64,000 nucleotides of DNA from Neoconidiobolus thromboides FSU 785 (lineage: Eukaryota; Fungi; Entomophthoromycota): NCBI GenBank assembly GCA_025603075.1, contig MU626367.1, positions 10,261-74,260 on the forward strand, read 5' to 3'. This document shows positions 11,706 through 45,991 of the stretch, piece by piece. Each line of letters begins with the position of its first letter. Within the stretch, counting starts at the first letter, position 1. Below the pieces are notes generated by a model that was not told the origin of the DNA, ran no database searches, and worked only from the letters and a program-made list of their open reading frames with translations. The position numbers were made by a program, and so were the translations under genes.

Positions 11706-13325
11706 TTAACCGCAACGTCCTGGATTTAAAACACACCAAAGAGGTTGAAGAGCTTGAGCATTAAAGCCACGATCTGTCAAACGGAAGCGGAAGTTATTTA
11801 AACGATCCAAAATAAACTTTGGACTAATCATTTGATTGCTTTTATCTTTATTACCATACCAAAGGACTTCACCAGCAACGGCAGTACGTGGCCAAATTAA
11901 AGGGTCTAAATTAAAATGATCTGTTTGTTCACTCCACATAGCGACTTCACCACCATGAATTAATTTATATTGATTTGGTTCAATTTTATCAAACAAATCA
12001 TAACTATAAATTATTTGCCATGATTTATAAGGATCACACCACGAATTCCCTGTACCTACACCAATCCATTCACCACGTCCACAATCTAAATACCAGTATT
12101 TATATGAAGAGCTAATTACTTTATAACCTAAATCAACAATCTTTTTTGCATCCGAAGCATCTAACCAGGCATGAATTAAACTATCTTTGGGTAATTCTAC
12201 TTTATGATTTAATAGCATTTCTTGATAAACCATGACTTTTCTCTTATTATCCATAGCTCTTTTATGCATATCTTTAGCAAAAGATTCTAATAAATCATTA
12301 TAAGTAACATTATGTTTACTAACATAATCCACAATCTTAGGTGAACTCTTCCAACAGTTTAAATTAACTTCATCTCCAGATAAATGCATATATTTATCTT
12401 TAAAGACAGTTGAGAATTCATCAATTAAATCATTAACTATTTTTTTAGATAAAGGATTAGTTGGATCAATTTGTCCACTGGGTGGTTGCATTGCATTATC
12501 CCACCAAGCATCTTTATCCATACATACGCCAATTTCTGGATAAGCTACTCCCATAGCATAAGAATGAGCAGGTGCTTCTAATTCAGGTATAATCCTAATA
12601 CCACGATCTAAACCATATTCAACTAATTCTTTAATATCTTCCATTGAATAAACTTGTCCTGGTAATAGAGAACCTTTTTGCCATAATATTGGATGCTTTT
12701 TAGACATAAATGGAAAACTATTAGAATCCGTAAGATGCCAGTGAAATACATTCATTTTACTATAACCTAATCCATCAATGGTTTTCTTTAAAGTGGCTAA
12801 CGGATAATAATTTCTACTAGTATCCAATAGCAAACCACGATGTGGTAACTTTGGATAGTCTTTAATATAAATAGGAGTATTAGATATAAACTTCTTTCCA
12901 TTTTTAAATTGAACCATTTGTTGAAAAGATTCTAAGCCACGAATAACACCATAAACGGATTTAGCTTCTAAAGTACCACTACCATCTTCTTTAATATTAA
13001 GAATATAAGATTCATCCGTTTCATCATCAAATTTATCATCAGTGTTTTCAACTTTAACATTCAATTGACGTAAAACCTTATCATAATCTGAATAAGTGCC
13101 TCGAAACTTAGGTACTATAGGGACATACTTTTCTTGTTGAATTTGTTGAATTATACGAAAGAATACACGATTTAATCGACCACTGTTTTTATTACTTTGG
13201 ATATTAAAACCAGAACTTAATAAGACACTCTTTTTTCCTTCTGTAAATTCTTGAGGTGTTGGAAATAATAAGCTTGGAGTACTTATTATACTATTGATTA
13301 AAAATAATACATAAAGTAAATTCAT
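11706..13325 (-). CDS. Secreted beta-N-acetylhexosaminidase, GH20 (539 aa)
   Basis: Signal peptide; HRGLLLDTSRNY, FHWHLTDSNSFP, IIPELEAPAH, catalytic HLSGDE, YLDCG, GGEVAMWSE, WPR. Confidence 0.95.
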   Translation of the reverse strand: MNLLYVLFLINSIISTPSLLFPTPQEFTEGKKSVLLSSGFNIQSNKNSGRLNRVFFRIIQQIQQEKYVPIVPKFRGTYSDYDKVLRQLNVKVENTDDKFDDETDESYILNIKEDGSGTLEAKSVYGVIRGLESFQQMVQFKNGKKFISNTPIYIKDYPKLPHRGLLLDTSRNYYPLATLKKTIDGLGYSKMNVFHWHLTDSNSFPFMSKKHPILWQKGSLLPGQVYSMEDIKELVEYGLDRGIRIIPELEAPAHSYAMGVAYPEIGVCMDKDAWWDNAMQPPSGQIDPTNPLSKKIVNDLIDEFSTVFKDKYMHLSGDEVNLNCWKSSPKIVDYVSKHNVTYNDLLESFAKDMHKRAMDNKRKVMVYQEMLLNHKVELPKDSLIHAWLDASDAKKIVDLGYKVISSSYKYWYLDCGRGEWIGVGTGNSWCDPYKSWQIIYSYDLFDKIEPNQYKLIHGGEVAMWSEQTDHFNLDPLIWPRTAVAGEVLWYGNKDKSNQMISPKFILDRLNNFRFRLTDRGFNAQALQPLWCVLNPGRCG

Positions 13326-14288
13326 TTTGAATGAAATAAAGTTAAAATTGATATATTAATTTTGATTTTATTTATATACTCTTTGTTTATTTATAATATT
13401 TAGTCAATGACTTAATTTAAATGCTCTTTTGAAACGTGGTTATCAAATGATCCGTCAGTCTTTTTCAGTTTACCGCTGATTTGATTGAATTCAGAACCAT
13501 TTGGTGATTTCGAAGCTTAGACTTTAACTAAATTTGGGAATATGGGGATACAATCTATAACTTAGAACTTTAACTGTTATTGTAGATGATAGCTTTTATT
13601 TTTAGGCTTCTATTTTTATAGTCAGGGCATATCCCTAAATGTATCTATAATAAAGGACGTATCTATATTCTTAAGCTTCATAATTTAAGCTTTGTTATTA
13701 ACTTATCAATTCTTCCCTTCAACTTTTTTCGAAAATGTCAAAACTAGCTTTCGAGTGGTTGATTTTAACAAACAAAAGGAGGTAGAAAGGGAAAATCAAG
13801 ATTCTTTGTAGCATCAATAACATTTTTTTTCTTTATGACCAAGTAATAATTATGGGGTTCTGTAGCCTAAAGTGTTTTAATTCTGCATTTGTTTATCAAC
13901 TATAGTAAAAATCACATACATCAATTAGTGTATAGGACTAAAGCATTATTGAGCTATATCTAGACAGATTGTTAGAAAAAGACAACGTTAATAAAATATT
14001 AGGATCATAACACCTTTTAAACAATTAAATAGTTTTTGTTAACTAAACAATAGTGTATTGTTTTTGTTTGTAAAATTAAATTTGTTGTATAGCATTATAA
14101 ATTGAATGCTATTATTTTATAAAATAATTTTAGATTTATTTTATTACAACAGTAATAACTTATTATGTTACAATCAATTGTTAAATATTAGTAATAACTT
14201 AAGTCTCAAAATAACATTTATTTAGTAACAACAATAATACTAACATAAAACATAATTAATACTTAAAATTTGCAAGCTTATTTACAGC

Positions 14289-14385
14289 TATTTTATTTTA
14301 TATTTATTTTATTTTATATTTATTTTATATTTATTTTATTTTATATTTATTTTATTATATATTTATTCCATTTTATATTTATTTT
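14289..14385. repeat. Low-complexity (TATTT/TTTTATA)n tract
   Basis: Degenerate tandem of TTTTA and TTTTATATTTA units. Confidence 0.6.
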
Positions 14386-14407
14386 GTCCACTTTTCATAG
14401 CAAAAAA

Positions 14408-14478
14408 TTAAAAAATTTGCTAGTATTTTTCCCACTCAATAGTACTTAAAATGAAAAGTAATGAAACCAACACACCCC
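14408..14478 (+). mobile_element. MITE copy 5 (degenerate, left end lost)
   Basis: Internal TTTTCCCACTCAATAGTACTTAAAATGAAAAGTAATGAAACCAACACACCCC matches the family consensus. Confidence 0.6.
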
Positions 14479-15076
14479 TTAGTCATTGAAATAAAAAATA
14501 CATTCTTATATTATTTAACTTATAAATAGTATTAAAATAAATAGAATAACAATTAAACTATAATTACTTAATAATCTTCTTTTTTCAACAATTATAACGC
14601 TGATAATATTTATTTCTTTAATATTCAAAAATACAACTAATAATACTATTTGATTAATGCTAACAAATTCATCAATTTCATAAAGGACACTCGGAAGAGT
14701 ACTTGTATATTTTTAATTTTAGTTATAATATGAGTTAAATACTTTATATTGATATTATACAATACTTCAAATAAAGTACAACAGAAATCAATATAAATTC
14801 TTATTTTATAAAATAGCTTTATCTCATCATACATTTATTCACTAACAAAACAGCAATTAATTATACTAAATAAGTCCAAAATCCTAAATTTTCAAATAAT
14901 GCTTATCAAATCCAATAAACGCTCATCTTCAATAATAACTCCAGTTTACATAATAATCAAAGGGGATAATAGTCTGAAATTCTATAAAAAGGGTCTGTTC
15001 AACCAATCGTATAAAACCATTCACAACTAGAACCTATATAATCAACAAACTTCGAAAATTATTTGTTTTTATAATA

Positions 15077-16591
15077 ATGAAATCTTTATCTTTTCAACAA
15101 ACTAAGAATGAAGATCCATTTTATACAACAAGAAAACATAAATATGCTTTTTATTTACATACTTTGGGTGTAAGTTTAATTATTCAACTTCACAATGATC
15201 TCAAAATTAACTCTCTAACTCTCTAGTTTCTTCCCTATGCCTTAACTGCCGTCCATGTTATCCCAAGTTTACTTGATAGTTTAATCACTGAAAACGGCTA
15301 TCTAGCTGATGGTCTTACTCAATGTAATGGGAAAGATATATGTTATTTAAAAATCAATACCTTAATGATTCCCAATACTTCAGCAGTATTATATATCAAT
15401 GGAATTACAACAATATTTCAAGCTTTATTTTTGATTTTATTTTCTGGGTTAGCAGATCATGGAAACTATCGAAGTTATTTTTTATTGGTATTTACAATAT
15501 TAGGTAGTATAAGTTCCAGTATCATTGCATTAATTAATAGTTCTAACTATGTGGTATTGATTATATTGTGTATGTTAGCTAATGTATCAACAGTAATTGC
15601 ATCTGCTTTCTTCTTATCTTATATTTCATTTTTTGCGAATTTTGATCAAAGAGTAATGGAGTGTAATAGTGACAAAGAAGTTAAAAAGATTAAAGATTCA
15701 ATAACAACAGAGTTATCAGCCAATCCATTTAGCTTAGCTATGTTATTAACTTTTGGAATATCATTAACAAGTTCATTAATATCCTTAAATAACAATAATA
15801 GTATTTTTAGTTTACAATTAGGAGTTAGTCTTCCTGGGTTGTTTTGGTTAATATTAGGCTTGATATCTTACATTTATCTCCCTAAATACAAATTCCCATC
15901 AATACCAAATGATCAAAATATATTTACTTACTCTATAATAGAAATTTATAAAATTATTATAAATTTCAAACAATATAAAGATATTTGGTTGGGTTTAGTT
16001 TCTTGGTTTTTCTTATCTGACGGATTATCAACTGGAATATCAACAGCAATTTTTGTTGGCCGTAGAGAGTTAGCAATTACTTCAAGTGATACTTTATTAA
16101 TTAATGCTATTGGTCCTTTAGTTGAAGGTGTAGCAGTAACAATATTATATTTTCTAAAAAAGTGGTTTCCAAAGCAACTCAATATTCTTAACCTAACAAA
16201 TTATCTCTCATTATTTTCATTAATCTTTCCAATCTGGGGTTTATTTGGACTATATCTTTCTGTTGGAATCAAAAGCAAAGTAGAGTATTATATCTATTAT
16301 TTATTTTTATTCTCCATTTATGCTACAATACAATGCTATCATCGAGCTTTGTATTCTCAAATGTTACCCAAATCAAAAGATGCAATGTTTTTTGCTATTT
16401 ATCTAATTTCTTATAAAGGGACTTCTTGGATTGGTTCAATATCTCTTGGGGCTATTGTTAATACTACAAATCAAATTAGATTAGGTTATTATTTAGTATT
16501 TGGACTTTTAGCAGCTGGGGTTATTTGTTTATTTTTTATTAAGTTGGAGAGAGCTACTAGGGTTCATAATTTGATATTGCAGACAGAGTAG
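15077..16591 (+). CDS. ATG22: Atg22-like MFS vacuolar amino-acid effluxer (2 exons)
   Basis: Exon 1 15077-15169, intron GTAAGT..CTCTAG, exon 2 15227-16591. Multiple TM helices; SGLADHGNYR, SWFFLSDGLST, RALYSQMLPKSKDAMFFAIYLISYKGTSWIG resemble Atg22 motifs. Confidence 0.8.
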
Positions 16592-17562
16592 ATAGAGTTG
16601 AGTGATTAATAAAGTTGATTTTTTGGTTTTTAAACATAACAAATTGACAATTGCTCATTTGAAATTTGAAATAAAAATGAGTAAAAAATATTAATAAGCA
16701 AATTTAAAAGTATTTTAAATTTCAGAACTATGATAAAAAAGGGAAGCTTTTATTTCTAGATTCATAATACCAATAAAAGGGTGAGTTGCCATCTTATTAA
16801 TCTATTTTATTTGTCAAGTTTTAGCTCTCACCTACATTTAACTATATACAAGAAATTAGTTGACTAATGTTAAAAATCAATATTCCCCCTATTTAGCACA
16901 ATAATTACTTTATGTAAAATCATCATTACTTGGGATAATATTCTATTTTGTTCTAAAAATTTAGATTATTAATTTCATTTTGTTGTTAAATGTTAATTTA
17001 CATACGCTTACTTAATACAATAAAAATAAACGATGGGGTCCATTTTAAACATTAATAAAATGAATATTAAATATGAAAATATGAAAACTAAGTCGTAAAA
17101 CGCATACATTAAACTCAATATAAATAAATAAAAACAAACAATAACAAACTAGTCAACCCCTTTTAATTAAATATCTAACGAATTAGCCTAAACAAAAAAA
17201 CAATCCTTAATTTCTATATTAATAAGAAATAATCCAAATGACTTCATTTTTTAAATTAGCAAATTTTTACACTCGTATTGAAATATTCCTATTTAATTGG
17301 TTAAGTGTGAAATGATACTATCTTTGAATTCGCGCAATAAATACGAAAAATTAAATTAAAAATTTCACTTTCGAAACTTTGGACTATAAATAGAAAGCAC
17401 CACTATAAAGAGTAACTTGAAAAAGGTCTTTTTTTTCTATATTCTATATTTTAACTATTTAATATTTATTTTCAAATTTATCGACATTTATCTTCTCCAT
17501 TTTATTTCGATTAAATAGTATAACAATTCAAACTCCAACTTCTCATTCATATAAATAAAACA

Positions 17563-18315
17563 ATGTTTACAGTTTTAAAACCACGTTCATTAAACCAATT
17601 AAAATATATCACTCATAGACTAACTAATACACGTCCAACCAGTAGTACAATTCCATTGAAACAATCAAATGAACCTTTTTTAGCATCCTGGAAAGCAGGG
17701 GGATTGTTATTAAGTGGAGGCTTAATTGGCGGAGAGGTTTACCGACAATATCAATCTCCAGGTTCAGATATAAGTAACAAACTTCACTCCCATCCATGGA
17801 CAACCGAACTTGAATCCAATACCTCATTTGATGATATAGGTGAAATGATAGTTGAAAGAATAGTTAAGGGGTTGATATCAGATGATCATATTACATTTAA
17901 TTATTATTATAAAGATAATATTTTAGCTTTATTACCAAGGATGTTTTTTAATAAAGAAAAAAAACAAGGTATTGAAGTTCATTATATTGGTACCAAAGCA
18001 GTAGATCATGATGATAGAATTCATCAAGGGATTTTAACTCATATGTTAGATGAAGCCTTTTACAGAGTAGCAGTATTATCTACTAGTAATGGAAAAAATA
18101 GAAATATGTTTACTGTTAATTTAAGTACGGAGTTTAATGCGGAGGGAATGAAGGAATTACCAAATGCGGATACTTTTGTTAAATTTATAATTGATTATGA
18201 AGATAGTAAAAGTAAACCCTATAAAGCTGTATTATCTGCAAAGATATTTAATCAATTTGATGAATTAGTTGGAACTGCTGAATGTACTTATGTAATTCCT
18301 AAAGATAGACGTTAA
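17563..18315 (+). CDS. Mitochondrial hot-dog-fold (PaaI-like) thioesterase-family protein
   Basis: Presequence-like N-terminus, TM segment, IHQGILTHMLDEAF (variant of HGGxLAxxLDE), FTVNLSTEF. Confidence 0.65.
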   Translation: MFTVLKPRSLNQLKYITHRLTNTRPTSSTIPLKQSNEPFLASWKAGGLLLSGGLIGGEVYRQYQSPGSDISNKLHSHPWTTELESNTSFDDIGEMIVERIVKGLISDDHITFNYYYKDNILALLPRMFFNKEKKQGIEVHYIGTKAVDHDDRIHQGILTHMLDEAFYRVAVLSTSNGKNRNMFTVNLSTEFNAEGMKELPNADTFVKFIIDYEDSKSKPYKAVLSAKIFNQFDELVGTAECTYVIPKDRR

Positions 18316-18435
18316 TAATTGCCATTATTAATTATAATAAAATTATTTTTTCTTAAATAAATAAAATTTGATAGTTTAATAATGCATGCTTTCATTTAAT
18401 AATACACAAATTTAAATAAGAATTATAGATATATA

Positions 18436-19979
18436 TTAAAATGGATTACATTGACAAGCGATTGCCAACCAAATAAAGGACATAGAAGAGCCTATGGATA
18501 AACCTAAAGTTAATGTAAGTGCCATAAGGGATGCCATAGTAGGCCTTGATTCTACATTAGTTGTACTAGGGCCTAATATCATAGTCATAGTGCCTAAATA
18601 ACCATTGGTCGTTGCGAACAATAACATCAAAGTGAAAAATAGAACATCATTTCCCAAATAATGATTTGTTCCTAACTTAGTATTACTCCATAAAAATAAA
18701 GGTACAAAGAGAAATCTTAAGATAGAAGCAAGGAGTAAATGCTTTGTATTGGTAATGAATAGAGTTGATATAGAAGGTAAATAACGACCTAATAAATCAC
18801 CTAGATTGTAGATAATAAAGCCTATTTCAATAAAATAAATCGATATAAAGGTGTCATTATTCGTTGATGTAATTGTGGTCGTAATAGCAGGAAATAAAGA
18901 TAAGGTAACAATAAATGTAAGCAATAAACTTATTAAAAGCTTCCCGTTTTCATTAATTAAAACTTTACATTCATTAACTTTCTCTTTGATCAATTCTGAA
19001 AAACTTAGCTCATGATCATCTTTTAATTCCATTTTAATTAACATAAACTGTGGATGTTTTCTTGAACCAAAAAAACAAACAAAGGTTAATAAACTTGTCA
19101 TTACTGCTGTTAAAAAATAATAATAACCTTGGTTCAAAATTAATTCTTCTGGTAATTGAATCAAATTCATTTGACCATGATAAGCAATCCCCAATTGAGC
19201 AATAGCTACCGCTAATCCTGCCAATGCTTGGCCCATTAAACTAGCTTGTACATAATTACTACCAAAAGTAGAGGCTAAAGCGAGACCGTCACTATTTAAA
19301 AAAGAAGCACTTGAAATGGATAAAAAGAGTAAGAGGATTGATATATAAAAATTAGTTTCAGGAAGGAAATTGGTTTGAGTAAATATTAACATGAAAATAA
19401 AACAGAGTGTTAAATAAAATATACTGGTCAAACTACGGGTATATAATCTAGACTATTAATATATGAGTTAATTAAATATTAATGTTATTTATGCAAGGAT
19501 GTGTTCATAAAAAAATACTTACCTTCCTTTGACTTCCTAATGAATAAAATAAAAACAATAGATTAGTTGTTGACCCAATAACTGAAAACCAACCATTGAA
19601 ATTGGTTTCATAGCGACTGTTTTTAAATTTATAAGAAAAGAAACTGGTAGCTGTGATGAAAACTAATCATAATTAAAAAGTATATTAATACCCAATTTCA
19701 ATTGAAATCATTTAAAAAGAAATGATAAAAATATAATAAAAATAAACGGTAAAACCTACCATTCCAAGGTAACAACATAGCTACCCCTAACATGAAAAAA
19801 GTGATATAGAGTAAACAATATGGGTCATCAATACTTTGTTTGAGTTCAGATTCTCCAGATTCTATTAGTGCGTAACCACTTCCTTGTGCTCGACCATTTC
19901 CTTCTTCTCCTTCACTGTAGTTAACATATCGCTCATCCATCAATGGTGTATTTAAATTTGATTTTATGTCTTGTGGCAT
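18436..19979 (-). CDS. Equilibrative nucleoside transporter (Fun26/ENT-like, 3 exons)
   Basis: Exons 19979-19760, 19662-19523, about 19452-18436. Motifs LGVAMLLPWN(V)FITA, MGQALAG, SLFPAIT, YNLGDLLGR, TNGYLGT, GLSIGS. Confidence 0.9.
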
Positions 19980-20304
19980 TAAGTTTGATAAAAAGATAAG
20001 ATGGAGGAATTGATCAAATTATAATATAATCATTCTTTTTATTAACGTTAGAAAAACTATGATAAGCTAAGTTGCTATTTTTGGTCAATTGACAGCTTTA
20101 TTTTTTTTCAAAATAGCTTATTTTATTGCTAATTTCTGAGGATAATTTAATTTCAATATGGATCAAATTATTGGACAGTGGTAGTGATGACTTAATATAA
20201 TGCAAATGGATAATGATTGAATATGAAATATTTGAAAAATATAAATATTGAAAAATATCAATGTAATTTAACATTAAAACAAAAACTAACAAAAATCTTA
20301 ATAT

Positions 20305-20390
20305 GGACATGTCTTTTTTTAGATTCTACTACTCAGCTTTTCCACTCAATAGTGCTTAAAAACCAACAAAGTAATGAAGCTAAAAAAGAT
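20305..20390 (+). mobile_element. MITE copy 6 (degenerate)
   Basis: ATAT-GGACATGT left end; TTTTCCACTCAATAGTGCTTAAAA and GTAATGAAGCTAAAAAA core; right end decayed. Confidence 0.55.
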
Positions 20391-20429
20391 AGTTCAATAC
20401 AAATTCTATTGTAGAAAAATATGCCTTGA

Positions 20430-20501
20430 AGGACCCACCGAGAATCGAACTCGGATTACAAGGATCAAAACCTTGGGTGCTAACCATTACACCATGGATC
20501 C
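20430..20501 (-). tRNA. tRNA-Gln(TTG): tRNA-Gln (anticodon TTG), identical to the copy at 11099
   Basis: Exact reverse complement of 11099-11170. Confidence 0.95.
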
Positions 20502-20564
20502 ATATTCTAAGGATTACCATTTGGTATTTTGGTTGTATATAAATCTTAATTTAACTAATAAAAT

Positions 20565-20661
20565 GAGAATATATTTTTTTGTTTAGGAATTTTACTAACA
20601 ATCTTTCCGCTCAAATAGCGCTTAAAAAACGTAAAAGTAGTGAAATCAAAAAAACATCCCC
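20565..20661 (+). mobile_element. MITE copy 7
   Basis: GAGAATAT...ACATCCCC; TSD AAAT. Confidence 0.85.
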
Positions 20662-21451
20662 AAATGTTTTATTATCATATTAACTATGTAGATGTTTGCT
20701 TTATATCTTTATGAAAATATTATTCCGATTTCAATAGTATAATTTGAAAAACCGTTTGACTCTAAAATAAAAAATAAGTACTAAATAAAAGATTGATTCA
20801 TTTAATAGTGTTAGGTGCTTATACTGTTTTAAAATCTAATTAAATCTAACAATCTATACATAGACTGATACCTTTTGAAAAGATGGCTTAGATTAGACAA
20901 AAATATAAATACATTATCAATTTACTTGTCTATATTAAGTATCTCAAAGTTTTTCTACCTTGAATTTCGCTAAATATTAGTATAAATCATTATCTGATTT
21001 CTGTTTTAATAAAAGCTATTAATATCTTGAATTATTACAAAATGACTTATTATTGAAGTTTAATAAATTTCCATAGTCTTATTTTAACAAATGAGAGCCA
21101 TCTTTTATTATAGTAAAACGATGATTTATTATTCAATCAAGTTTATTTACTGGAAGATGTTAAAAGGTAGTGAAAACATTATTTGAATTATGGCCTTAAT
21201 AACCAGACTCTTCAGTCTCTTTAATAAGTTTTAATTGTCAGCATTATAAGTGACTTTTATGGTTGCATTTCAAGAAAAGTAGCTTGTATTTCATTTTAAT
21301 TTTAATTACCACATATTATGAAAATTATTGAGATTTTACGTAGAATATAAGTACAATGTGTTATATCAACATAAACTTGTAAAAAAGCCAGATTGTAAAT
21401 GAAGGATTATAAAAATAGTAATAACAAAGAAAAGCTGGATTCATATTTATT

Positions 21452-22409
21452 TTAGTTAAAAAAAGTTTGTTTAACATACTCTTTTATGGATACAAACTTA
21501 AAGCCAGGAAAAAAATGGTTGAAATTTCCAGCAAGATAACAATAACCTTTTTCAATATCTCTCTTAAACAAATAAGATATTTGTGTCATTAACTCAGTAT
21601 CCTTAGCATTAATAACGTCCTCGGCTTCCTCTAAGGTAATTTTTTCAACTTCAAAAGGTTTATTACTAATTTCTGATATGTTTTTTAATACTTCATTTAA
21701 GCATGCATTTTCTCCAACGATATTAACAAATTTATTTTTTACTCCTGGAAGGAAATAGGTATTTACAACACATTTAGCCACATCTTTTACACTAGTAATA
21801 GTCAGCTTTGTTTCCCCACTCCCAACAATTTTAGCTTTATGGTTTGGAACATCAATACCAAATAATTCAGATAGTAAATGTTCCATAAGGAAACCATTAT
21901 TATAATAAATATAATCTAAACCAGAACTTTCAAGGTGACTTCTAACTTCTTTTTTTGGTAAAGTGAATGGATTATCTACTCTAACAAATAAAAACTCAAA
22001 CATCTAATTAATGTCAAATATACAACTTAACTTACCCTTCTACTTTAGCACCAAACTCAGAAGGTATGAATAATTTAACGTTGGCTTTAACAGAAGCATC
22101 AATCAAAGTAACGCTTGCTTTGACAAGGTCTGGAAGGCTTAAAGTTACTATTACTACATCAATGTCTATCAGCGCTTTTAAAACACTGTCTTGGTTATTA
22201 TAATTCACTTCCACAATCTGTCCACCTTGCTTAATAAAGCTATCTTTCAATTCTTTTTTGGTATCGTTTTCACTAGAAGCTCGGGTTAAGATTGTTACTT
22301 TAAGATCTTTGTCTTTTAAGAATTCTTCCACGAGATAATGGCCCAGTTCTCCAGTTCCACCTGCAATTGCTATGTTTTGATAGTGTTTTGAGATGCTTGA
22401 GGTTGACAT
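21452..22409 (-). CDS. NmrA-like / isoflavone-reductase-like NAD(P)-binding protein (2 exons)
   Basis: Exons 22409-22036 and 21980-21452. Rossmann motif IAGGTGELG, VKLFIPSEFG, KKEVRSHLESSGLDY, TSVKDVAK. TATA-like element about 40 bp upstream. Confidence 0.88.
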
Positions 22410-23675
22410 AATGTTTCAAAGTTACAAATTACTGAGTTTATGATTGCTATTTATATGTCAATTTCTTTCAAAAGTACCTTGTCATATTGAAATAATACTT
22501 TTATAAGTTTATGCAAACTAAGTTGCTTTCTATTTAAGGTATAAAACTAAACAAATGTGATATTTAAATTCATCAAATGCTCAAATTATAACAAAATTAT
22601 CAATCATTGCAAACTAAATATTTAGTTTTCTTTATTATTATATTTTCTAATATATTTTTTAAACATTAAATTGAGTTTAGATCATATCATCGCTATATCA
22701 ATATAAACCGAATCATAACATTTCATTTTTACATAGATATTGATATTAATAAATAGCATAATAATAATAACTTTATAGAATGTTCAATTAGTAATGTGTT
22801 AAAAATTTAATGTATGATTGAAGATTAGACACAAAATGCATTCAAAAATAAAATAGAAATTGATAGACTAAGAGATTGTCTTAATAAAAATGCTATCAAC
22901 TTCAAATTCCATTATACGTTTTAAATAAAATCCTTGTTAAATGATCAATATTTTTATCATAAATGAATTAAGTATATTAATGAAGGATTTTGAAATTTGT
23001 TTTAAACTTAATTATAAGATCATTTTAAGTAATCATAGCTTTTTGATTAAATACAGAGTTCATTACTGGTTACAGCATAATATATTTCCTATGCCTATGG
23101 ACAAGATTATTTTAATGCGAAATACTTTGTTGCAATTTTGTACTTTTACAAACTTGGGTTTGCTCAAAAAATATATACACTTGGTTCATAAAGCCAAAAT
23201 TTATTTTAAAGTAGTTTCTTGGCTACTCAAAGTTGAATGTATTATACATTTATTTTCATACAACTAATTCAGTTAAAAACTAAGATTATTATTTTTTTAA
23301 AGCTGTCAGATGGCACACATCTCCATGTCAGGCTCTGGAATATGAACCGACAAGATCATCAACTTTTACAAAGACATAAAGCCTAAGTAAACCCTTCCCT
23401 TTTTAGAGACCGTGCTAACCATCATCAACCAACCTTATGAAGTTTTCAATGTTGTTAAACATTGTTACGAAATATACTAAACATGTGATCCTGTAAAGTA
23501 CAGTCGATAAAGTTGATTAGATAAATCCAGTTTCAGTAGTAACTTTTCTTTTTAAAAGTTAAGTTGTGGGATTAACAATTCGATAGCTTTTGTTGCGTGA
23601 GTTGGTATTTTCTAAACATTTTGATTGGCTACCTTGGCTTTAACTAAGTAATTTGGTTGGTTGTCTTAACTACGA

Positions 23676-23735
23676 TTTTTTTGACTCAAATAGCGCTTAA
23701 AAAATAGAAAGTAATGAAATCAAAAAAACATCTCC
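23676..23735 (+). mobile_element. MITE copy 8 (right half only)
   Basis: CTCAAATAGCGCTTAAAAAATAGAAAGTAATGAAATCAAAAAAACATCTCC followed by AAAT. Confidence 0.7.
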
Positions 23736-24069
23736 AAATGCTTTACAAATCCTTTAATTAGTTTCAGTTTTAGTAATACATAAATTTGTGATGGGATTAG
23801 GGCTCACTGATGTCTATTATAAGCATAATATTAGAACAGGCATTTCCTGGCTGTTTACAATATAGCATTTGAGCGTAAGGTTATGGGGATTGGGCAAGTC
23901 CATTTGTTAAAGTAGTCAGTATAGTTTACTTTATCACTGAAGGATTTAAGAAGTGGGCTAGTAAATACACGTTAAGCTAGGTTTAAACACCTATTTTGGA
24001 CAGAACAGCTGCTTAATCTATATTAATTAGTCTCGCAGTGGTACATACATATATTAATATTAAACATAT

Positions 24070-24165
24070 GTGGATGTATTTTTATATTTAAGAGTTTTAC
24101 TAACAATTTTTTCACTTAAATAGCGCTTAAAAGATGGAAAAAGTAATGAAGTCAAAAACATCTCC
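24070..24165 (+). mobile_element. MITE copy 9
   Basis: GTGGATGT...ACATCTCC; TSD ATAT. Confidence 0.85.
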
Positions 24166-25347
24166 ATATAAAGTTGAGTAGTTTGTTTGTCTAATGGATT
24201 TGTTATAATTATAAAATGCTTAAAATATGAAATATGAAATAAAAATAAAACCTATTCGATTATAACTAACAAAAGCTACTATTGTATGTTACTTCAACTA
24301 TCTTCTTATCAAACTATTGTTGTTTAAATGATTGGCTGATATTTAGATAGTTTTGTTAGTATAATTGGCAAAAGGCTGTAACTTGTAAAAATTTATACTC
24401 CTTAAACCTTTAATTGAAGTACAGTGAAATTAAAGATAAGGATAAGCGGAAATAAAGACTGGCTAAACATAAATGAGGTTTTCATCTATAAATTAAATGA
24501 AAAGTGAAGATGCTGTTGAAACAAAAAATATTTAATTTGCAATAGTATTGCACTGAAAAAATTCAAAATTCTCGATAAAGAATAAATTCTAATGATATCA
24601 TTAGACAAAAACTATCAATAAAATTTCAAAACTTAATACAACATTAGTATAACACTAACTATAATCTACAGTGATATAGAAATTTTAAGTAAGTTTGAGA
24701 CTTATTAAAAGTATACATTGTTCATTTAAGCAAAAATGCATCTTATTATCTATTTTAGTATAGTAAAAATTCGCTCTAAATTTAAAGTCGCTTTAAACAA
24801 CGTAAACAAAAAACCTATTTCTATGGCAAACAAATAAACCTTAATATTTCCAAGACTCAAATAATCTCTATTAATGATGTTTCTTATTAAAAATCTGGTT
24901 TATTTTTATTGTTGTTTTGGTTTTTAAAATCTTTTTGAGGTTTTGTAGAATTATTGTCAGTTTCAGCAACTCAAAATTACAAAAAAGCTAGCTAAAGTTT
25001 TTCACAAAAGTCTTGAAGATAAAGATCCTTGAGAAAATTAGAACAAAACGGCTCCTAAATTGGAAAATAAAAATAAAAAAATGAATTTTCGGGTAGTAAA
25101 TAAAGTATCTGGTAAGCAATATCTGATAGCCCTATATTGTTTTAACAGAGAAATAGTGGCTTATTTATTACTATATGTATTTAAAATTTTATTTCAATCA
25201 AACAATAGGTGATAAGTAGTGATAGTAACAATATGAGGGATTGATAGTATATAATGGTGAAAAAAACACAACACAATTGCCAAAAAAACCAAGATAAAAT
25301 AATTATTTATTGCTACTCTTTTATCATTTATCATCACTCTTAACAGA

Positions 25348-25810: not shown

Positions 25811-25820
25811 CTTATTATAT

Positions 25821-26702: not shown

Positions 26703-26799
26703 GGGGATGTATTTTTGTGTTTAAGAATTTTACTAATAATTTTTCCACTCAAATAGCGCTTAAAAATAGAAAAAGTGATGAAGCCAAAAAAACATCCTC
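26703..26799 (+). mobile_element. MITE copy 11
   Basis: GGGGATGT...ACATCCTC; TSD AATA. Confidence 0.85.
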
Positions 26800-32448: not shown

Positions 32449-33054
32449 TCATTGCTGTAAAAATGGATTGCTAATTTCAATAGCTTCCTCTTCAGGATGA
32501 ATCAATACTACAGTAGGGCCACGACATACTAGTAAACCTAACTCTCTAGTTTTATCTGAACCTTTGGCTTTATGAAAATATAAGTTTTAAATTGTATATA
32601 ATTGAAATAATCTTACTATTGCTTTCATTTGAATCCGCTATTAACAAGTTAAAGATTAATATTTTATATTAAGATTTAAAATGATTTTGCTTTACCTCTT
32701 ATAATTTCTATAGTATGGTCTAAAACCAAGTTTAAAAGGGGGTCGAACCCTTTTAAAATACCAGAAACTAAAAATTAGGTCATTGAATTTGAAAAGTGAA
32801 GGAAAAAGTAATTTACCTTCTCTGCCACCTGAAAATTTAACATGTACTTTTTTTTCTAAAAATTTAGAAAGATCCAATATCGACTCTTTCTTCTTCTTAG
32901 GTTTATCTAAATTATCCTTATTTCTATCGCCGTTATTGTTTGAATTTCCTCCTCTTCCTCGAGTGCTATTTCCTCCTCTTCCTGTACCACGTCCCTATAC
33001 ATTTAATCAGTTTTATTCTTTATTATTTTATTTCATCATTACTCTTCCTGACAT
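32449..33054 (-). CDS. LSM7: U6 snRNA-associated Sm-like protein LSm7 (5 exons)
   Basis: Spliced product MSGR|GRGTGRGG..KKKKESILDLSKFLEKKVHVKFSGGRE|VSGILKGFDPLLNLVLD..|..TRELGLLVCRGPTVVLIHP..ISNPFLQQ*. Confidence 0.9.
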
Positions 33055-35252: not shown

Positions 35253-35699
35253 ATGGAATATAAATTAATTGGAAAAACGCCTTATAGTTATCATAACTCA
35301 CAACGATTAACACAATGTATAATAAGTATTACGACTGTATTAACCATGACTCCGTATTTAAAACAAAATAGCTTTTGTATAGCTTTATTAGCGATAAGTT
35401 TAACTTCTTTTTTATGCTCTAGTGTCTTTTTAGAAATAGAAACTTGGTGTAAAAAATATCGCAGTCACTTATTACTTGTTTTAATGATCCCAATGGTTGA
35501 GCCTCTCATCTCTTTGTTTATTTCTTTTATGTGGCTGCTTTTAGCCGTCGTAGCTCCTATTCATGCAAACCATAAACTCTTGTCACTATCTTCACAATGT
35601 GGCTTGTTACTCTTAAATTCTTGTGCTTGGTCTCTGCCAGTTATCATCAACCTTACCGTTATATTCTGGCCTAACTTAAGTATTTTTTGTAAAAAATAA
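35253..35699 (+). CDS. Hypothetical multi-pass membrane protein (148 aa)
   Basis: Open frame with four hydrophobic segments, slightly higher GC than its flanks, A-rich start context; no family recognised. Confidence 0.5.
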   Translation: MEYKLIGKTPYSYHNSQRLTQCIISITTVLTMTPYLKQNSFCIALLAISLTSFLCSSVFLEIETWCKKYRSHLLLVLMIPMVEPLISLFISFMWLLLAVVAPIHANHKLLSLSSQCGLLLLNSCAWSLPVIINLTVIFWPNLSIFCKK

Positions 35700-37346: not shown

Positions 37347-38135
<789 letters not shown>

Positions 38136-38414: not shown

Positions 38415-39023
38415 TGAGTAATTAAAGGACTATATTAAACCCTCCAATTACTAAAAAATAAAGTGATAGTATCGTTTCATATAGAGTACTAGAATATTCA
38501 TAAATAGCATCAATTAATTATAATTCATAACAATTTGTACTTTAATCTTTAAAGTAAAATATATGCTCAACTTTGAAAAGTGGCACCTGATCTGAATTTG
38601 AATTTAAAGTTTAAAATTAACCAAGTTATTACTTTACTATGTAAAGGCTGAATATCCCATTAATTAAAAGTAAAGAGGAAGGAAATTTTCAAAGTGATTC
38701 ATTTTACCAAAGTGGTTTTGAAACAAGCCACAAGAGATTGTAAAGTTATGGAATTGAACTCAGTCTTCTTAATTTATAAATTTATAAATAATTCTGGAAT
38801 TGATTATGATAAAAAACAAATAATAAAGAAACCCTTTAAGTATATAAATTTATATAGCCGAGTGTTAAAACATGTTTTTTTACTATTTTAAATAAATTAT
38901 ATTGTAAATATCTTTTGAATTTAGATTTTAATATTCAATTATAGTAATTTTTCACCATACTTATTTTTTAGAATAAATTTAAAATTTCATAAGCTTTATT
39001 AGCATTTTTAAAAACAAACATAT

Positions 39024-39119
39024 GGGGATGTATTTTTGTTCAAGAATTTTACTAACAATTTTTCCGTTCAAATAGGGCTTAAAAAATGAAAAAAGTAATG
39101 AAACCAAAAAAACATCCCC
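39024..39119 (+). mobile_element. MITE copy 13
   Basis: GGGGATGT...ACATCCCC; TSD ATAT. Confidence 0.88.
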
Positions 39120-39770
39120 ATATTTTAAATTTACAAATTTTGTATAATTTAAACAATCAAATTTATATTGCGATTGATATAATTGAATTATATACTTATT
39201 TAAAAATAATTCAAAAGAAACAATACCTCAAATGTTCTATAATAATAAAATTATAAAAAAAATAAGGTAGTATAGTTTAAAAAAAATTATAAAAAAGTAT
39301 ACAAAAAACCATTAAAAATATTTTTTGATTCAAAAATAACTGTTTAGTTATAATCAAGCTATGTTAAATCATTCAAATTTAAAATTTAAGTTTTAAATTG
39401 TTTAATCAGGACTAATAATACTATATCAGTATTTAATATAAACCCAGTTTTTTTCAGCTTTTCTAGCTTAAAAAATTAAGGTTGTTAATTTTTTAATATT
39501 TTTTGTGTTATTACTTATTAAATTATCATTATTATTATTTAATAAATTAATATTATTTTATAATATACTTTTATTATTTTATTAATGAATATATTTATTT
39601 TTATTATACTTGTTTTTATTGTTTTATACGATTTAATAAACATTTTATACTTATGAACTATAATTTGTTTTAATTATATAAATTAAAAATTATTAATTAT
39701 CAACTTTATTTAACATTACAATATTGTGGATAGCAGTTATTTCTACTTAAAATGTAACATTTCATTATAT

Positions 39771-39867
39771 GGGAGTGTTTTTTTTGAGTTCATTATTTTT
39801 CTATTTTTAAGTGCTATTTAAGTGGAAAATTTGTTAGTAAAATTCTTAAATACAAAAATGCATCCCT
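39771..39867 (-). mobile_element. MITE copy 14 (right TSD split by solo LTR B)
   Basis: GGGAGTGT...GCATCCCT; left ATAT; right ATAT is restored when LTR B and one CTAT are removed. Confidence 0.85.
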
Positions 39868-39869
39868 AT

Positions 39870-40336
39870 TGTGAAATATCGCTTTGTCAGCCCCATGGTT
39901 AATTATAGTATAACAATCGCCTAAGCTGTCGTGTTCTCGATTATAGAGACAATTAGTCTCATGCTCTTATTCTGATTTGTTAAGAGAATTTCTATCTTCT
40001 TCGTCTCAAAGAATATTCTCCCGTCGTTTTGATATTTATACTTATTGGAGTATAAAAGAGATTCTAAAACATAATAGCTTGAGGCTTTTTAACTGAATTA
40101 TTCCTTGATACCTTGAACATTTAATAAAGCCACTAAGTTTGCTTAACAGTATTTTACGTAGATTTTACATTAGTATTGTCTATTCTATTTGTCTTATATA
40201 GCTTGTAACCTATTACGTGCTATTCCTCATAATCCAAGTCTATCTTAGTCACATAAACTAAGACCTTTCGACTTATAGTGTACTCAACCCAGCAATAGCT
40301 GTCCTTGACTCCAAACACTGAGTACCAGATTTCACA
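39870..40336 (+). mobile_element. Solo LTR copy B (467 bp)
   Basis: TGTGAAAT...ATTTCACA; TATAAAA and AATAAA inside; perfect 4-bp TSD CTAT (39866-39869 and 40337-40340). Confidence 0.8.
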
Positions 40337-40821
40337 CTATATAGTAAAATTTTAAACTTTGTTTATATGTATAACTTTTTGTTATAATTTTTTTTCTACC
40401 TTTTAGCTTTTTACAATTAATATAAAATAAGTAGGCTTTGAGCATTAAATTTAATAACCCTTACTAATTTAATTTTATATTTAATTGCAGTATAATATAA
40501 CAATATAACAATATAACTTAGTTTACTAAATAGTTTTTTATATTTAATATTAACAAACTTTTTATATTTTTTAAGTATTATGTTTTTTGATAAAAAAATA
40601 ATCTTAATCTGATTCAATCTTTATTTTTTCATGTTTTTATTTAAAATAACTTTATTGTTAAATTTTAAAATATATACATGTGTTTAACTTTTTTTAACCC
40701 TTAAGCATTGTTTGGGTAAAAAGAATTTCAACAAGATTCTTAAAGACAAAAAGATATGTTTATACATTAATAATGCTCCTATTTTATTTTTATTAGCTTT
40801 TCTAGTTTACTAGCATAATAT

Positions 40822-40906
40822 AGGGATGTTTTTTTATTACTTTTTCATTAGCGTTATTTGAGTGGAAAGATTGTTAGTAAAATTCTTAAATAAAAAATAC
40901 ATCCAC
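40822..40906 (-). mobile_element. MITE copy 15 (internal deletion)
   Basis: AGGGATGT...ACATCCAC; TSD ATAT. Confidence 0.8.
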
Positions 40907-41951
40907 ATATTTTGATATTTATTTTGTTTTTTTAAAAAGCTGAAGTTACATATAATTTACATATAAATTAATATTAAATATTTACAAACTAATTTAGTTA
41001 TGAACCTTGTATTTTTATGTATAGTATTAATATTTTTATAATATATTTGAAATAATTCTAAGTTTTTTGATCAAAAAATAGTAGTTATTGATTGGAGCAG
41101 ATATTAATCTTAGATCAGTATAAAAATTATTTTCATGTAAAAATATTTTGATGTTGCAATCTTATACCCCTACAACTAATTTTTCATAAAGTACCATATC
41201 GCAAGTTATTGAAAAATTAATAGTATATATAATCAAACATACTCTATTAATAAATAAATACCTTATAATTTCACATAACCAAATTTTATACTAAGTTAAT
41301 AACAAAAAAGCTATTAACCTAAGAATAAATGATAGTATTCAAAAATAACTCACTTTAAACCAGCTTAAATTGAATCTTACAGTTAATTTTTATTGTTGAA
41401 AAAGTAAGCTTAAACTGCATAAAAGAGAGGAGGAGAATGGGAATTGGCTTTAATAACCGCTTTTTAAAAAATGTCATAAATTTTTATCCTGGAAAATTAA
41501 TTTCCCTTAGTTATGATGTCATTTCTTAAAAATTAGCCAAATAAAAATTGGGTGGGGAAAGCTGATGAAAAAATATTTTTCAAAAATGTCAAAAAATAGA
41601 TTGCTATTTACCAAATTTAGGAGGTGCAAAGTAATTTGTAATTTTTCAAACAATTTGAAACTTAATAACAAATTATATTGATTTAATTAATCCTTTAATT
41701 TGTCAATAAGTGATCAATTTTTAACAATCCCATTGATTTGAAAAAATATGATCCAAACAGAGAATTTATTAATTTTAATAGAGATAAGCTTTTGTAATTT
41801 CATTGGCTCTTAAAAATCACATTCTTTTGATATCTATTTAAGGGAGAATCCAAAAAAAGAGTATATAAATCAAAATAAACATAAAACTAAAAGAATTTAA
41901 TTTAAAATAAAACAAAAATAAAAATAATTTCAAAAAAATAACGACAGCAAT

Positions 41952-42626
41952 ATGTTAACTAAATTAAAGCAATTTAAATCCCTTTATCAAAGTAAAGCAG
42001 GGATAAGTATGACATCCAGTTTACCAGCCATTAATTATCCAACATCCAATTACAAACCCGCTTATTTAAGAAATACCTTATTATTAATAGCTGGTTTAGT
42101 TGCTCCAAGCTTGTATTATAGTACTAAATCAACATCAAACTCTGGTATAAAATTAGAACCTTACAACTTACCTGTTATTTCAAAACATAAAATCCAACTT
42201 GAAGCTAATGAAGAAGTCACTTTACTCAGTAAATTACAAACTCAATTATTCCCAACCTCTACTCATTTAACCAAACAAACATTAAAAAGAGAAGATTTAA
42301 TTCAAGCTGAGTTCAGCGGTAAATTAACTAAAGTTTATTATATGGGTGCCAATGTTTGTGGTCATAAAGGAATTATTCATGGAGGTTTATTAGCTACTTT
42401 ATTACAAGAAGCTACTAGAGAATTTGCTGGTTTTACAGATCCTAAGGTTAATGTTAAATATTCTGTTAATTATAGAAGACCAGCATTCTCGGATCAACCT
42501 TTAATTGTTATGGCTCAACCTCCGGTTAATTCTGTTGATGGAGTTACTATTAAGGCTGCTATTATGGATCAAAATGGTCAAGTGTTAACAGATATTATTA
42601 CCACGTTTCCAGGCCAAAAGATTTAA
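41952..42626 (+). CDS. Mitochondrial hot-dog-fold (PaaI-like) thioesterase-family protein
   Basis: Presequence and TM segment; GANVCGHKGIIHGGLLATLLQE; YSVNYRRP. Confidence 0.75.
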   Translation: MLTKLKQFKSLYQSKAGISMTSSLPAINYPTSNYKPAYLRNTLLLIAGLVAPSLYYSTKSTSNSGIKLEPYNLPVISKHKIQLEANEEVTLLSKLQTQLFPTSTHLTKQTLKREDLIQAEFSGKLTKVYYMGANVCGHKGIIHGGLLATLLQEATREFAGFTDPKVNVKYSVNYRRPAFSDQPLIVMAQPPVNSVDGVTIKAAIMDQNGQVLTDIITTFPGQKI

Positions 42627-43034
42627 GTTGATGCGGTTGGTTTACTTTTTTTTTATCTCTCTTGTTTCTATTTTTAATGGTTTAATACTATATCTCCTCC
42701 ACTTTACTCCTCCTTCTTTTGTTTACTAACTATAATAAACTATTTCTTGTTGGAATTGAACTTATATTTATTTCGTTATCTTATTAAATTCCCTGTTATT
42801 GTATCTATTTTTATTAATAAAATTAATCTATCGGTTATCAGGTTTTACCGGTTTTTAAGTTTAAGTCAATTGATCATTGAATTGAATCATGTTATTACTA
42901 TAGATAATAAACAAAAATAGTTTATCATATCTATTATTATAACATTCAATTATATATTTACAAGTAAAAATTAATTTTTTATTATACGTTTTACTTATTT
43001 GTTTTATTAATATATAGTATAAGTCAAACTATTT

Positions 43035-43133
43035 GGGGATGTTTTTTCTGGCTTCATTACTTTTTCCATCTTTTAAGCATTATCTGAACGGAAAAATTGT
43101 TAGTAAAATTCTTAAATACAAAAATACATCCCT
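43035..43133 (-). mobile_element. MITE copy 16
   Basis: GGGGATGT...ACATCCCT; TSD ATTT. Confidence 0.85.
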
Positions 43134-43377
43134 ATTTTCTATTTTCTATTTTTATTCTACATAACCAACGATATGAATGTATTTATTGTTCATACAAAAT
43201 TAATACTTCAAATTATAACTATTAAATCAATTTACATATGATATTAATTATCTATGATACTCATATAAGGTAAATAATAATAATAAATTATATCCTTGTT
43301 TTATATGGGAAACAATTAAATAGTTCAAACTACTAATTTGAGATCAATAAAAGACACTCAACATAAAAGTATAACAT

Positions 43378-43612: not shown

Positions 43613-44119
43613 TTAGACAGCATCATTTCTTAAACTAATATATTCAATAACGTCTTTAACAGTTTTAATTTCAACTGAATCATGTTCCGGTATTTCAATA
43701 GAAAACTCTTCTTCAACTGCCATAATAACTTCAACTGTATCTAAACTATCCAATTTTAAATCTTTGGTTAAATGGGCTTCAGCAGTGAGCTAAAAAAGAG
43801 AGAGAAAGGATTAATTATTGTCTTATGAATGAAAAAAATAAACTTGTTATAGAAGTATGATTAAAATAAAAAATTATTATCATTAATTATAAAGCTAATA
43901 GAATAGTAATTAATGGAATATAAAAAAACTTACTAAACCTTGATCAACTTTATCGAAGTCCTTCAATAAATCTAAAACTCTTTCTTGAATTATTAACTTT
44001 GGGTTACCACTTGGAGCACCATAAAAACGTAAACTTTGATTATTTACAATCATATTGGATTTCATTAAATTCTTTCCATTGAATAATTTTAAACTGGCTA
44101 AAGATCTCAAATAACGCAT
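43613..44119 (-). CDS. ACP1: Mitochondrial acyl carrier protein (2 exons)
   Basis: Exons 44119-43934 and 43789-43613; presequence; LTKDLKLDSLDTVEVIMAVEEEFSIEIPE with an intact DSL phosphopantetheine site. Confidence 0.93.
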
Positions 44120-44472
44120 CTTTTATTGTTCTATTTTAGTTGTATAGAAAGTAGTTTAATCAAAAATTATGTTGTTAGATTATCTTAGATTTCGAAGTCT
44201 GGTTTTTGAAATTTTGAGCTAAATTTAAAGTTTGTTACTTGATTGAAGTTTATTGGACAATACAGTGAAGTTGTTATTTTATTGGTTCAAATCACTCAAT
44301 AAAATTAGAATCCCATTCCAATTATCTTCTTATAATTGGGTATTATTTTTCAACTTAATTTTTCCAAACAAAATCAAATTAATTTTGTATTATAATCTTC
44401 AAGAATTCACTTTATTAGCCTGATCTTTAATGTATCTTCCATATGTAAACCCAATTTCAAATTTAAAGATAT

Positions 44473-44570
44473 AGGGGGGGGGTTTTTTGGTTCCATCACT
44501 TTTTCTATTTTTTAAGCGCTATTTAAGTGGAAAAATTATTAGTAAAATTCTTAAACAAAAACACATCCCC
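44473..44570 (-). mobile_element. MITE copy 18
   Basis: G-run left end ...ACATCCCC; TSD ATAT. Confidence 0.82.
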
Positions 44571-44704
44571 ATATCTTAATGAGTTAGTATTATGAAACAT
44601 TTAGGTCCATTATAATAAGAGCTGTTTATATATTGACTACTAATACTTAATTTGTAATTGGGTTAAAAATTAATTATTGTATTATTATTTTGAAAACAAT
44701 AAAT

Positions 44705-44802
44705 GGGGGTGTTTTTTTGGCTTCATTATTTTTTCCATCTTTTAAGTGCCATTTAAGTAGAATAATTATTAGTAAAATTCTTAAATACAAAAATACATTC
44801 TC
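44705..44802 (-). mobile_element. MITE copy 19
   Basis: GGGGGTGT...ACATTCTC; flanks AAAT/AATA (imperfect). Confidence 0.8.
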
Positions 44803-44853
44803 AATAATAAAGTAACTTGTCTTAAAACTTTTATTTCAATAAACATAATATAG

Positions 44854-45991
44854 TTAATCCAGTAATAAACTGTTTTTTAAATCCAAAGGTAACATAATAA
44901 ATTCCAAATCAGTAGTAGTGATCCCATCAATAAATTTGTAGCACATCATAATACTACATAATTGACTAACCTGAAAGAAAAATATACCATCTAAATAATG
45001 CTTAAAGGATTGACATAGTGGTATTGATAATAAAGATAAAAATAACAAGCCTGATAAATAGAATAAATAACCTATAACAATATCGCCTAAACAATAATAA
45101 CAATAATTAATAATAGTAATAATAGTAATAATAGTAAAATAAAATTAATGGCTAATATTATATTACTATTTAATAGATAGAATTTACCTAATGCCCATCG
45201 GTTTTCAATATAATAAAAAGTAAAACATAATTGAGATATCATATATAATGTAATTAATAAATTGGGTAATAATAAATGAAGAAACCATAATAAAGATGGG
45301 TTTTTGGAATCTAATCCCCCCATGTTTTTAATAGTCAATATACTAATTAAAAACATTATTAAAAATAAACTTAATGAAATGAGCTTGATGTACTAAGAAT
45401 AATAATATTAATGTTAATGTCAGTTTAAGGATATAATAATGAAGAACTTACTAAATTGATTCGATTAACTTTTAATATGAATGGAAAATTTAACAATCCA
45501 GTTAAAAATAAAAAGATTGATAAACTTAAATTCAAAGAAGTATTTAAAAGTACTAAAAACTATAATAATGTTATTAGTTTCATATAACAATACAATGTCT
45601 AATTAAACTTACTGTATAAAACCCTGAATTTGATGGTATGATATTTGTAATAGTTACTGAATCCACAGTCAACATAAATAAATAGAAATAAAAAAAAATT
45701 ATCATATTTTTAATCACTAGTAATTTGTCATTAATAAAAAAGTAATTTATTATAATATTACTAATACTTACCTTCTGTCATTGTTTTCTTTTTTAAATTA
45801 TATAAAATAATTGACAACATAATAAAAGCAATTAAATAAATAAAAAAATAACAATATTCAAATAGATAGGAATTAAACCATTGATAAGTACGAGTATAAC
45901 ATTTGGTTGATAAGCCGGTGGAATTGTTGAGTAAATTACAAATACTTAATGCACTTGAATCACATACTTCAATGTAACTACCAAATTTCAT
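44854..45991 (-). CDS. CHS7: Chs7-like chitin synthase export chaperone (5 exons, about 289 aa)
   Basis: Exons 45991-45772, 45716-45613, 45559-45452, 45392-45188, 45086-44854 sum to 870 nt in frame. MKFG..VC..L.IC..CY.R..N..LF N-terminus; RWALGD; HYLDGIFF..C..MMCYKFIDGITTTDLEF matches the Chs7 C-terminal signature (HYLDGxFF..MMVYKYWDSITxEDLEF). Confidence 0.85.

Follow-up and report, generated by a model that had tools for sequence, protein, structure and literature searches.

A divergent Chs7-family gene near an ankyrin chitin synthase gene in Neoconidiobolus thromboides: possible remnant of a synthase-chaperone pair

Chs7 is the dedicated endoplasmic reticulum (ER) export factor and escort of the chitin synthase Chs3. 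In Neoconidiobolus thromboides FSU 785, an AT-rich stretch of 64,000 nucleotides (contig MU626367.1, positions 10,261 to 74,260; GC content ~25%; hereafter the window) carries a gene for a divergent Chs7-family protein (CHS7) and, 12.5 kb away, a gene for an ankyrin-repeat chitin synthase (ank-CHS). A preliminary description of the window had joined these two genes with a GH20 hexosaminidase gene and RHO1 in a proposed cell wall gene cluster spanning 34 kb. The four genes of this 34-kb stretch do not make up one functional unit. On sequence comparison, we give about an even chance to the reading that the proximity of CHS and CHS7 is a loosened remnant of an ancestral synthase-chaperone pair, with possible client specialisation of the CHS7 paralogue, and we favour this reading over pure chance.

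The case for an ancestral pair comes from other fungi. Neighbourhoods of ank-CHS orthologues and of Chs7 genes were fetched from relatives, and every open reading frame (ORF) fragment of the window was compared against them. The 91 loci from other organisms consisted of 11 curated loci and 80 metagenome CHS loci found by a scan with the window CHS; the metagenome loci were mostly short or non-ankyrin and served as a negative control only. In Syncephalis fuscata, a Chs7 gene of 328 codons lies head-to-head with the ank-CHS orthologue across a gap of 2,199 bp, and in Coemansia sp. IMI 203386 a Chs7 gene of 355 codons is placed in the same way with a gap of 1,088 bp. When these two loci, ~24 kb each, were compared directly, Chs7 and ank-CHS were the only genes in common. 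Judged from sequence, the pair either outlived the reshuffling of all its surroundings or arose twice. The two genes were found together in 2 of ~7 informative ank-CHS loci. As controls, the canonical class IV CHS of N. thromboides has no nearby Chs7 gene, nor does any of ~5 distinct non-ankyrin metagenome CHS loci with full 10-kb flanks. The pairs in Syncephalis and Coemansia point to ank-CHS as a client of Chs7. All Coemansia proteins among the 120 matches listed fell in the ankyrin-CHS group, some of them truncated models without an Ank domain, and Kickxellomycotina are reported to have only one Chitin_synth_2 synthase (PMC8778642), so that ank-CHS would be the obvious Chs7 client there. 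Ankyrin chitin synthases are widespread in early-diverging fungi, and no functional studies of them were found in the literature searched; likewise, searches on an ankyrin-CHS class or on linkage of the Chs7 chaperone with CHS returned nothing relevant. The back-to-back arrangement is a first genomic hint that ank-CHS may use the Chs7 export route.

The four genes named in the preliminary description are indeed in one neighbourhood, and all are intact (Table 1). RHO1 and CHS7, described as absent or fragmented in the ORF track, were missed there because four introns split each of them. The GH20 protein has an N-terminal GH20b2 domain (PF14845), and its catalytic Asp-Glu pair is intact in the motif HLSGDEV, which aligns with HMGGDEV of the chitinolytic insect moulting hexosaminidase OfHex1, its closest solved relative (3nsm, 1.5e-86); an Aspergillus enzyme came second (5oar, 5.5e-79). 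The motif has Ser where the aligned OfHex1 chain carries Gly. An exact look-up of the GH20 ORF matched no gene on record. By eye, the GH20 N-terminus resembles a signal peptide, and this feature together with the likeness to chitinolytic hexosaminidases means that the enzyme could equally serve nutrition on insect cuticle. For RHO1, profile and structure comparisons were made per exon. All five exon pieces match the Ras profile and are collinear; for exon 4, fungal Rho1 structures were best, by ~17 bits over Cdc42 and RhoA, and for exon 5 the two best chains, 6jik and 8etd, scored 8-15 bits over RhoA. With a Rho-type G domain nearest to Rho1, a CKIDL motif and a C-terminal CAAX box, CELL, that ends in L, the product belongs to the Rho1/RhoA subfamily.

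The preliminary description took GH20, ank-CHS, RHO1 and CHS7 to be physically linked, and in its full form the proposal makes them a co-regulated wall cluster for a special life stage, like the chsD, Chs activator, GH17 and FPWD cluster of Pezizomycotina. Four wall-related genes among ~13 in 34 kb, and precedents for wall gene clusters in Ascomycota (PMC4141765, PMC4964407, PMC7053769), count in its favour. Against it, RHO1 or GH20 was found in the flanks of 0 of the 91 CHS or Chs7 loci from other organisms, which leaves the four-gene cluster unsupported; a conserved cell wall cluster would show the same gene set linked in relatives, and no such linkage was found in these loci. The claim of linkage holds up for CHS and CHS7, given the head-to-head pairs elsewhere, and not for the other two genes. 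Further, as the preliminary description had itself cautioned, unrelated genes are interspersed: ~9 such genes plus transposon debris were counted between the four. RHO1 is a pleiotropic, highly conserved GTPase, and the GH20 enzyme has the alternative nutritional role given above. We judge RHO1 and GH20 to be ordinary genes and chance neighbours of CHS, and we regard the co-regulated four-gene cluster as highly improbable.

Comparisons of ank-CHS used the long third-exon ORF and the ankyrin exon. Exon 2 encodes the ankyrin repeats (Ank_2, 4e-15), and the catalytic motifs QVYEY, LGEDR, QRRRW and SWG are all intact. Ankyrin repeats, CHS4 and Chitin_synth_2 domains, the QxxEY, EDR and QRRRW motifs and placement in a clade with Entomophthora muscae assign the protein to the ankyrin class of division 2. 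It shares 69% identity with the E. muscae orthologue and ~60% with Basidiobolus and Glomeromycotina proteins of the same ankyrin-CHS4-catalytic architecture. In a quick tree its branch is ordinary (0.27 vs a median of 0.29), and its clade, with support of 99 at the core and 89 at the base, is set apart from canonical class IV, in whose own clade the N. thromboides canonical paralogue, P0082, is grouped with other non-ankyrin proteins of this class (support 99). The window synthase thus resembles class IV enzymes of the S. cerevisiae Chs3 type in its CHS4 and Chitin_synth_2 domains, in its complete set of catalytic motifs and in the 62% identity that its catalytic half shows to the canonical class IV paralogue, but it differs in bearing N-terminal ankyrin repeats and in lying outside the clade of Chs3 orthologues. 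The ank-CHS clade spans Blastocladiomycota to Mucoromycota and Zoopagomycota, with no Dikarya member among the matches listed. By these comparisons, the window ank-CHS is unremarkable and well conserved, and the ankyrin-CHS clade to which it belongs is old. The view that CHS and CHS7 are both divergent consequently fails for CHS and stands for CHS7, which is treated below.

Several observations on ank-CHS loci may be recorded here. The window ank-CHS had no self-match among proteins of 693-2205 residues in a large collection in which both its paralogue P0082 and the CHS7 product were found; the deposited annotation may lack the gene or split it. Its orthologues at NCBI are often labelled 'ATP-dependent RNA helicase' (Entomophthora, Basidiobolus, Coemansia, Blastocladiella), seemingly a misannotation passed on from record to record. 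Both Basidiobolus species have a Chitin_synth_1-type synthase gene 7-8 kb upstream of ank-CHS (locus L005, 1-2077; locus L010, 279-2687), with the same genes in between, i.e., the two-synthase neighbourhood is conserved. A gene head-to-head with the B. ranarum ank-CHS was considered as a Chs7 gene and rejected; by eye it is cyclin-like. The Calcarisporiella ank-CHS (VTP21DRAFT_9165) is followed 4.6 kb downstream by a RhoGEF gene (locus L008, 18642-21811), and 23 locus tags separate it from a Chs7 gene (VTP21DRAFT_9188), the contigs of ank-CHS and Chs7 being equally long.

The CHS7 gene model is identical to the deposited protein KAI9293920.1 (P0241), which was the full-length query. Three of its exon pieces match PF12271 collinearly (profile positions 1-77, 165-235 and 236-283), and the P0241 record carries a precomputed PF12271 annotation. 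At full length, P0241 shows 36% identity to E. muscae proteins and 27-33% to canonical Chs7, whereas canonical Chs7 proteins of different phyla are ~57-65% mutually identical over the C-terminal half. An exhaustive search with the last exon returned the gene itself first and no other match above 52% identity; a word search with full-length P0241 gave itself and one Logan protein only, and a metagenome scan with the divergent Chs7 alignment gave no matches. PF12271 genes number at least three in this genome, each on a scaffold of its own: P0241; P0263, a canonical Chs7 (53-59% identity) placed among canonical proteins in the tree; and P0292, a further divergent member. In a careful tree P0241 lies outside the canonical CSE-7/Chs7 clade, in an Entomophthorales-only clade (support 100/99) with two sub-lineages, one uniting P0241 with E. 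muscae P0246 and P0384 (A) and the other uniting P0292 with E. muscae P0374 and P0412. Because each sub-lineage holds genes of N. thromboides and E. muscae, the divergent copies would predate the split of the genera and have been retained. The window CHS7 is, on this sequence evidence, a strongly divergent, old, retained paralogue. All three N. thromboides proteins are deposited as 'hypothetical protein'; these entries, and the ank-CHS entries called helicases elsewhere, can now be corrected. In Piptocephalis tieghemiana there are two Chs7-family proteins, P0211 and P0343, each on a contig of 39,267 bp, and since the contigs are equally long they may be linked paralogues.

How far P0241 has departed from its family raises the possibility that it is neofunctionalised or decaying and escorts no chitin synthase, in which case its position would be irrelevant to its function. 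Of the 92 columns that are near-invariant in the family, 47 are retained in P0241 vs 78 in P0263; it lacks the KYTAVGRKE, EDGT and WDSITKE motifs and the entire C-terminal tail, stopping at residue 289, and its terminal branch is 7 to 25 times the median. On the other hand, the five exons join at canonical splice sites into an intact reading frame, the core motifs CY-R, KHYLDG-FF and DLEF are kept, and an orthologue has been retained in E. muscae. The fold prediction is also confident. An AlphaFold2 model (predicted local distance difference test, 83.8; predicted template modelling score, 0.82) places two strands at residues 36-38 and 41-43, followed by seven long helices within residues 46-267, so the predicted fold fits the architecture of the Chs7/CSE family, i.e., two N-terminal strands and seven transmembrane helices (PMC11803449); no solved Chs7 structure was found for comparison. 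We consider loss of the escort function unlikely. With respect to S. cerevisiae Chs7 and N. crassa CSE-7 and CSE-8 (PF12271, Shr3-like), the window gene is alike in family, in its length of ~290 residues and in the predicted strands and helices; it differs in being only 27-36% identical to any family member and in lacking the disordered C-terminal tail of the CSE-7/Chs7 clade. The Entomophthorales subfamily also stands apart from one likely CSE-8-type row (Protomyces), the trees containing no bona fide CSE-8.

A number of results weigh against the remnant reading, and most of them fit pure chance: with many chitin synthase genes and several genes of the Chs7 family in the genome, CHS7 and the others would have come to lie near CHS by coincidence, and the head-to-head pairs of Syncephalis and Coemansia, though real, would concern canonical Chs7 and have no bearing on the window. 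In the window, ank-CHS and CHS7 are convergent with five genes between them and hence share no promoter. The Chs7 genes linked in Syncephalis and Coemansia are of the canonical type, not the divergent type, and N. thromboides carries its canonical Chs7, P0263, on a different scaffold; the genome also has a CHS paralogue, P0082, besides its three or more Chs7-family genes. The pair was not found within ~10 kb in Basidiobolus ranarum, B. meristosporus, Calcarisporiella or Blastocladiella, on a 13.9-kb metagenome contig with a 67%-identical ank-CHS, or around the Dimargaris Chs7 (~10 kb). It was not seen in the E. muscae flanks either, an uninformative absence because these are transposon-bloated and one stops at a contig edge. 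A search for a fossil Chs7 upstream of the window CHS, and for a fossil CHS beside CHS7, gave nothing better than E = 0.27. The Chs7 family is expanded in the lineage, with 4 copies in C. coronatus and 9 in B. meristosporus (PMC11803449), and this expansion together with the presumably numerous CHS genes raises the odds of chance proximity. Support for P0241 in sub-lineage A is 86/78 only, and its biased composition and very long branch make its exact placement less certain. Finally, CHS is slow-evolving and CHS7 extremely fast, which is not a mirror-tree pattern: the branch is of ordinary length for CHS and very long for CHS7.

What speaks against coincidence is, first, that the same two families are directly adjacent in two other subphyla. 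Second, the chance of a Chs7-family gene lying within 13 kb of this one CHS is ~0.3% by a rough estimate (three genes x ~26 kb / a few tens of Mb), tempered by the family expansions in the lineage and by the hypothesis being post hoc. Third, the duplication in the Chs7 family from which a copy remained here could have been a local one. On balance, chance proximity is possible but seems to us doubtful as the explanation.

If the proximity is a remnant of an ancestral pair, the following course of events may be proposed. Ancestrally, Chs7 and ank-CHS would have stood back to back and been transcribed away from a common intergenic region of 1-2 kb, as they are placed in Syncephalis (Zoopagomycotina) and Coemansia (Kickxellomycotina); such a region, if it co-regulated the two, would balance a polytopic synthase with its limiting ER-export chaperone. 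In Entomophthorales, duplication within the Chs7 family would then have given rise to a fast-evolving subfamily beside the canonical copy. This subfamily has two sub-lineages, of which a sub-lineage A copy would have remained in the ank-CHS neighbourhood. Later rearrangement and insertions would have left the two genes convergent and 12.5 kb apart. N. crassa has paralogues with different clients, CSE-7 serving a class IV CHS and CSE-8 a class I CHS (PMC11803449). By analogy, we infer that P0241 may be the ER-export and escort factor of ank-CHS, and that the canonical copy may serve the canonical class IV synthase. A divergent CHS7 paralogue in the window and a canonical Chs7 on another scaffold fit a specialised chaperone, so that the specialisation part of the earlier suggestion of a co-evolving specialised pair is borne out to this extent, while mirrored divergence is not. 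A stronger version, in which Zoopagomycota inherited a selectively maintained divergent ank-CHS/Chs7 pair, Entomophthorales evolved a dedicated fast chaperone subfamily and the window holds the last trace of the linkage, strikes us as rather improbable; if it were true, this subfamily might control when chitin is laid down as the fungus passes between its walled stages and those within the insect, in which the wall is thin or missing. In sum, a vague cluster idea becomes two testable pairs, ank-CHS with P0241 and the canonical class IV P0082 with P0263, and a candidate dedicated chaperone is named in an insect pathogen.

The remaining features of the stretch are listed in Table 1. The NmrA-like gene is split into an N-terminal half (22032-22415) and a C-terminal half (21452-22003), the break being a short intron or a frameshift. 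The mitochondrial acyl carrier protein gene is in tandem with CHS7 on the minus strand and ends ~730 bp before the CHS7 3' end. Many copies of repeats resembling miniature inverted-repeat transposable elements (MITE-like) lie at 3756-3911, 9090-9269, 24063-24251, 25523-25942, 26579-26830, 39788-40362, 43018-43161, 44475-44812 and 56590-56942, and several flank the genes discussed, some directly downstream of CHS7. Matching repeats occur on N. thromboides scaffold L004 at 1-400, ~20900-21030 and 22440-23230.

Table 1. Features of the window between the GH20 and CHS7 genes, in window coordinates.
Feature	Position	Strand	Structure	Match	Remark
GH20 beta-N-acetylhexosaminidase	11706-13325	-	single exon, 539 amino acids	PF00728 (Glyco_hydro_20) 3e-88; PF14845	
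Block of unrelated genes and repeats	15227-26900				from GH20 to CHS
ATG22-like gene	15365-16591	+		Pfam	between GH20 and CHS
ORF without assigned function	17563-18315	+			between GH20 and CHS
ENT nucleoside transporter	18436-20018	-		Pfam	between GH20 and CHS
NmrA-like gene	21452-22415	-	split in two ORFs	Pfam	between GH20 and CHS
MITE-like repeats	~24000-26900				between GH20 and CHS; also on another N. thromboides scaffold (L004)
ank-CHS	27775-32342	+	3 exons, ~1487 amino acids	Chitin_synth_2 4e-228; CHS4	
ank-CHS exons	27775-28132 (putative), 28188-28495, 28545-32342	+			splice sites read from sequence
Sm-like fragment	32695-32994	-		no Pfam match	judged by eye
Membrane ORF	35253-35699	+	148 amino acids	no Pfam match	
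RHO1	37347-38135	+	5 exons, 195 amino acids	Ras profile; fungal Rho1 structures	
RHO1 exons	37347-37442, 37495-37582, 37633-37742, 37794-37928, 37977-38135	+			
Repeat or long terminal repeat debris	~39000-41000				between RHO1 and CHS7
Thioesterase-like gene, weak	41952-42626	+		weak 4HBT match	
Mitochondrial acyl carrier protein	43616-44122	-		PP-binding 5e-9	
CHS7, divergent Chs7-family gene (P0241 = KAI9293920.1)	44854-45991	-	5 exons, 289 amino acids	PF12271	
CHS7 exons	45991-45772, 45716-45613, 45559-45452, 45392-45188, 45086-44854	-			

Linked cell wall genes are known from Ascomycota. In Pezizomycotina, a cell wall metabolism cluster contains chsD, a Chs activator, a GH17 glucanase and FPWD (PMC4141765, PMC4964407). 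The arrangement originally proposed for the window is similar in that a synthase has an accessory factor and a wall hydrolase as neighbours, but the synteny of the Pezizomycotina cluster spans many species, whereas of the window genes only the synthase and chaperone recur together elsewhere. Closer parallels are the head-to-head arrangements of the class IV chs4 with its activator csa1 and of class V with class VII synthase genes (PMC7053769; PMC4141765). In Syncephalis and Coemansia, too, only a short intergenic region lies between a synthase gene and a divergently transcribed gene on which its activity or delivery would depend, an arrangement suggestive of a bidirectional promoter. The differences are that the partner is an ER-export chaperone rather than a Skt5-like activator or a second synthase, that the synthase is of the ankyrin class, and that the pair, intact in Syncephalis and Coemansia, is broken up in the window. 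The Syncephalis and Coemansia pairs extend the head-to-head pattern to a chaperone and to the ankyrin class of chitin synthases.

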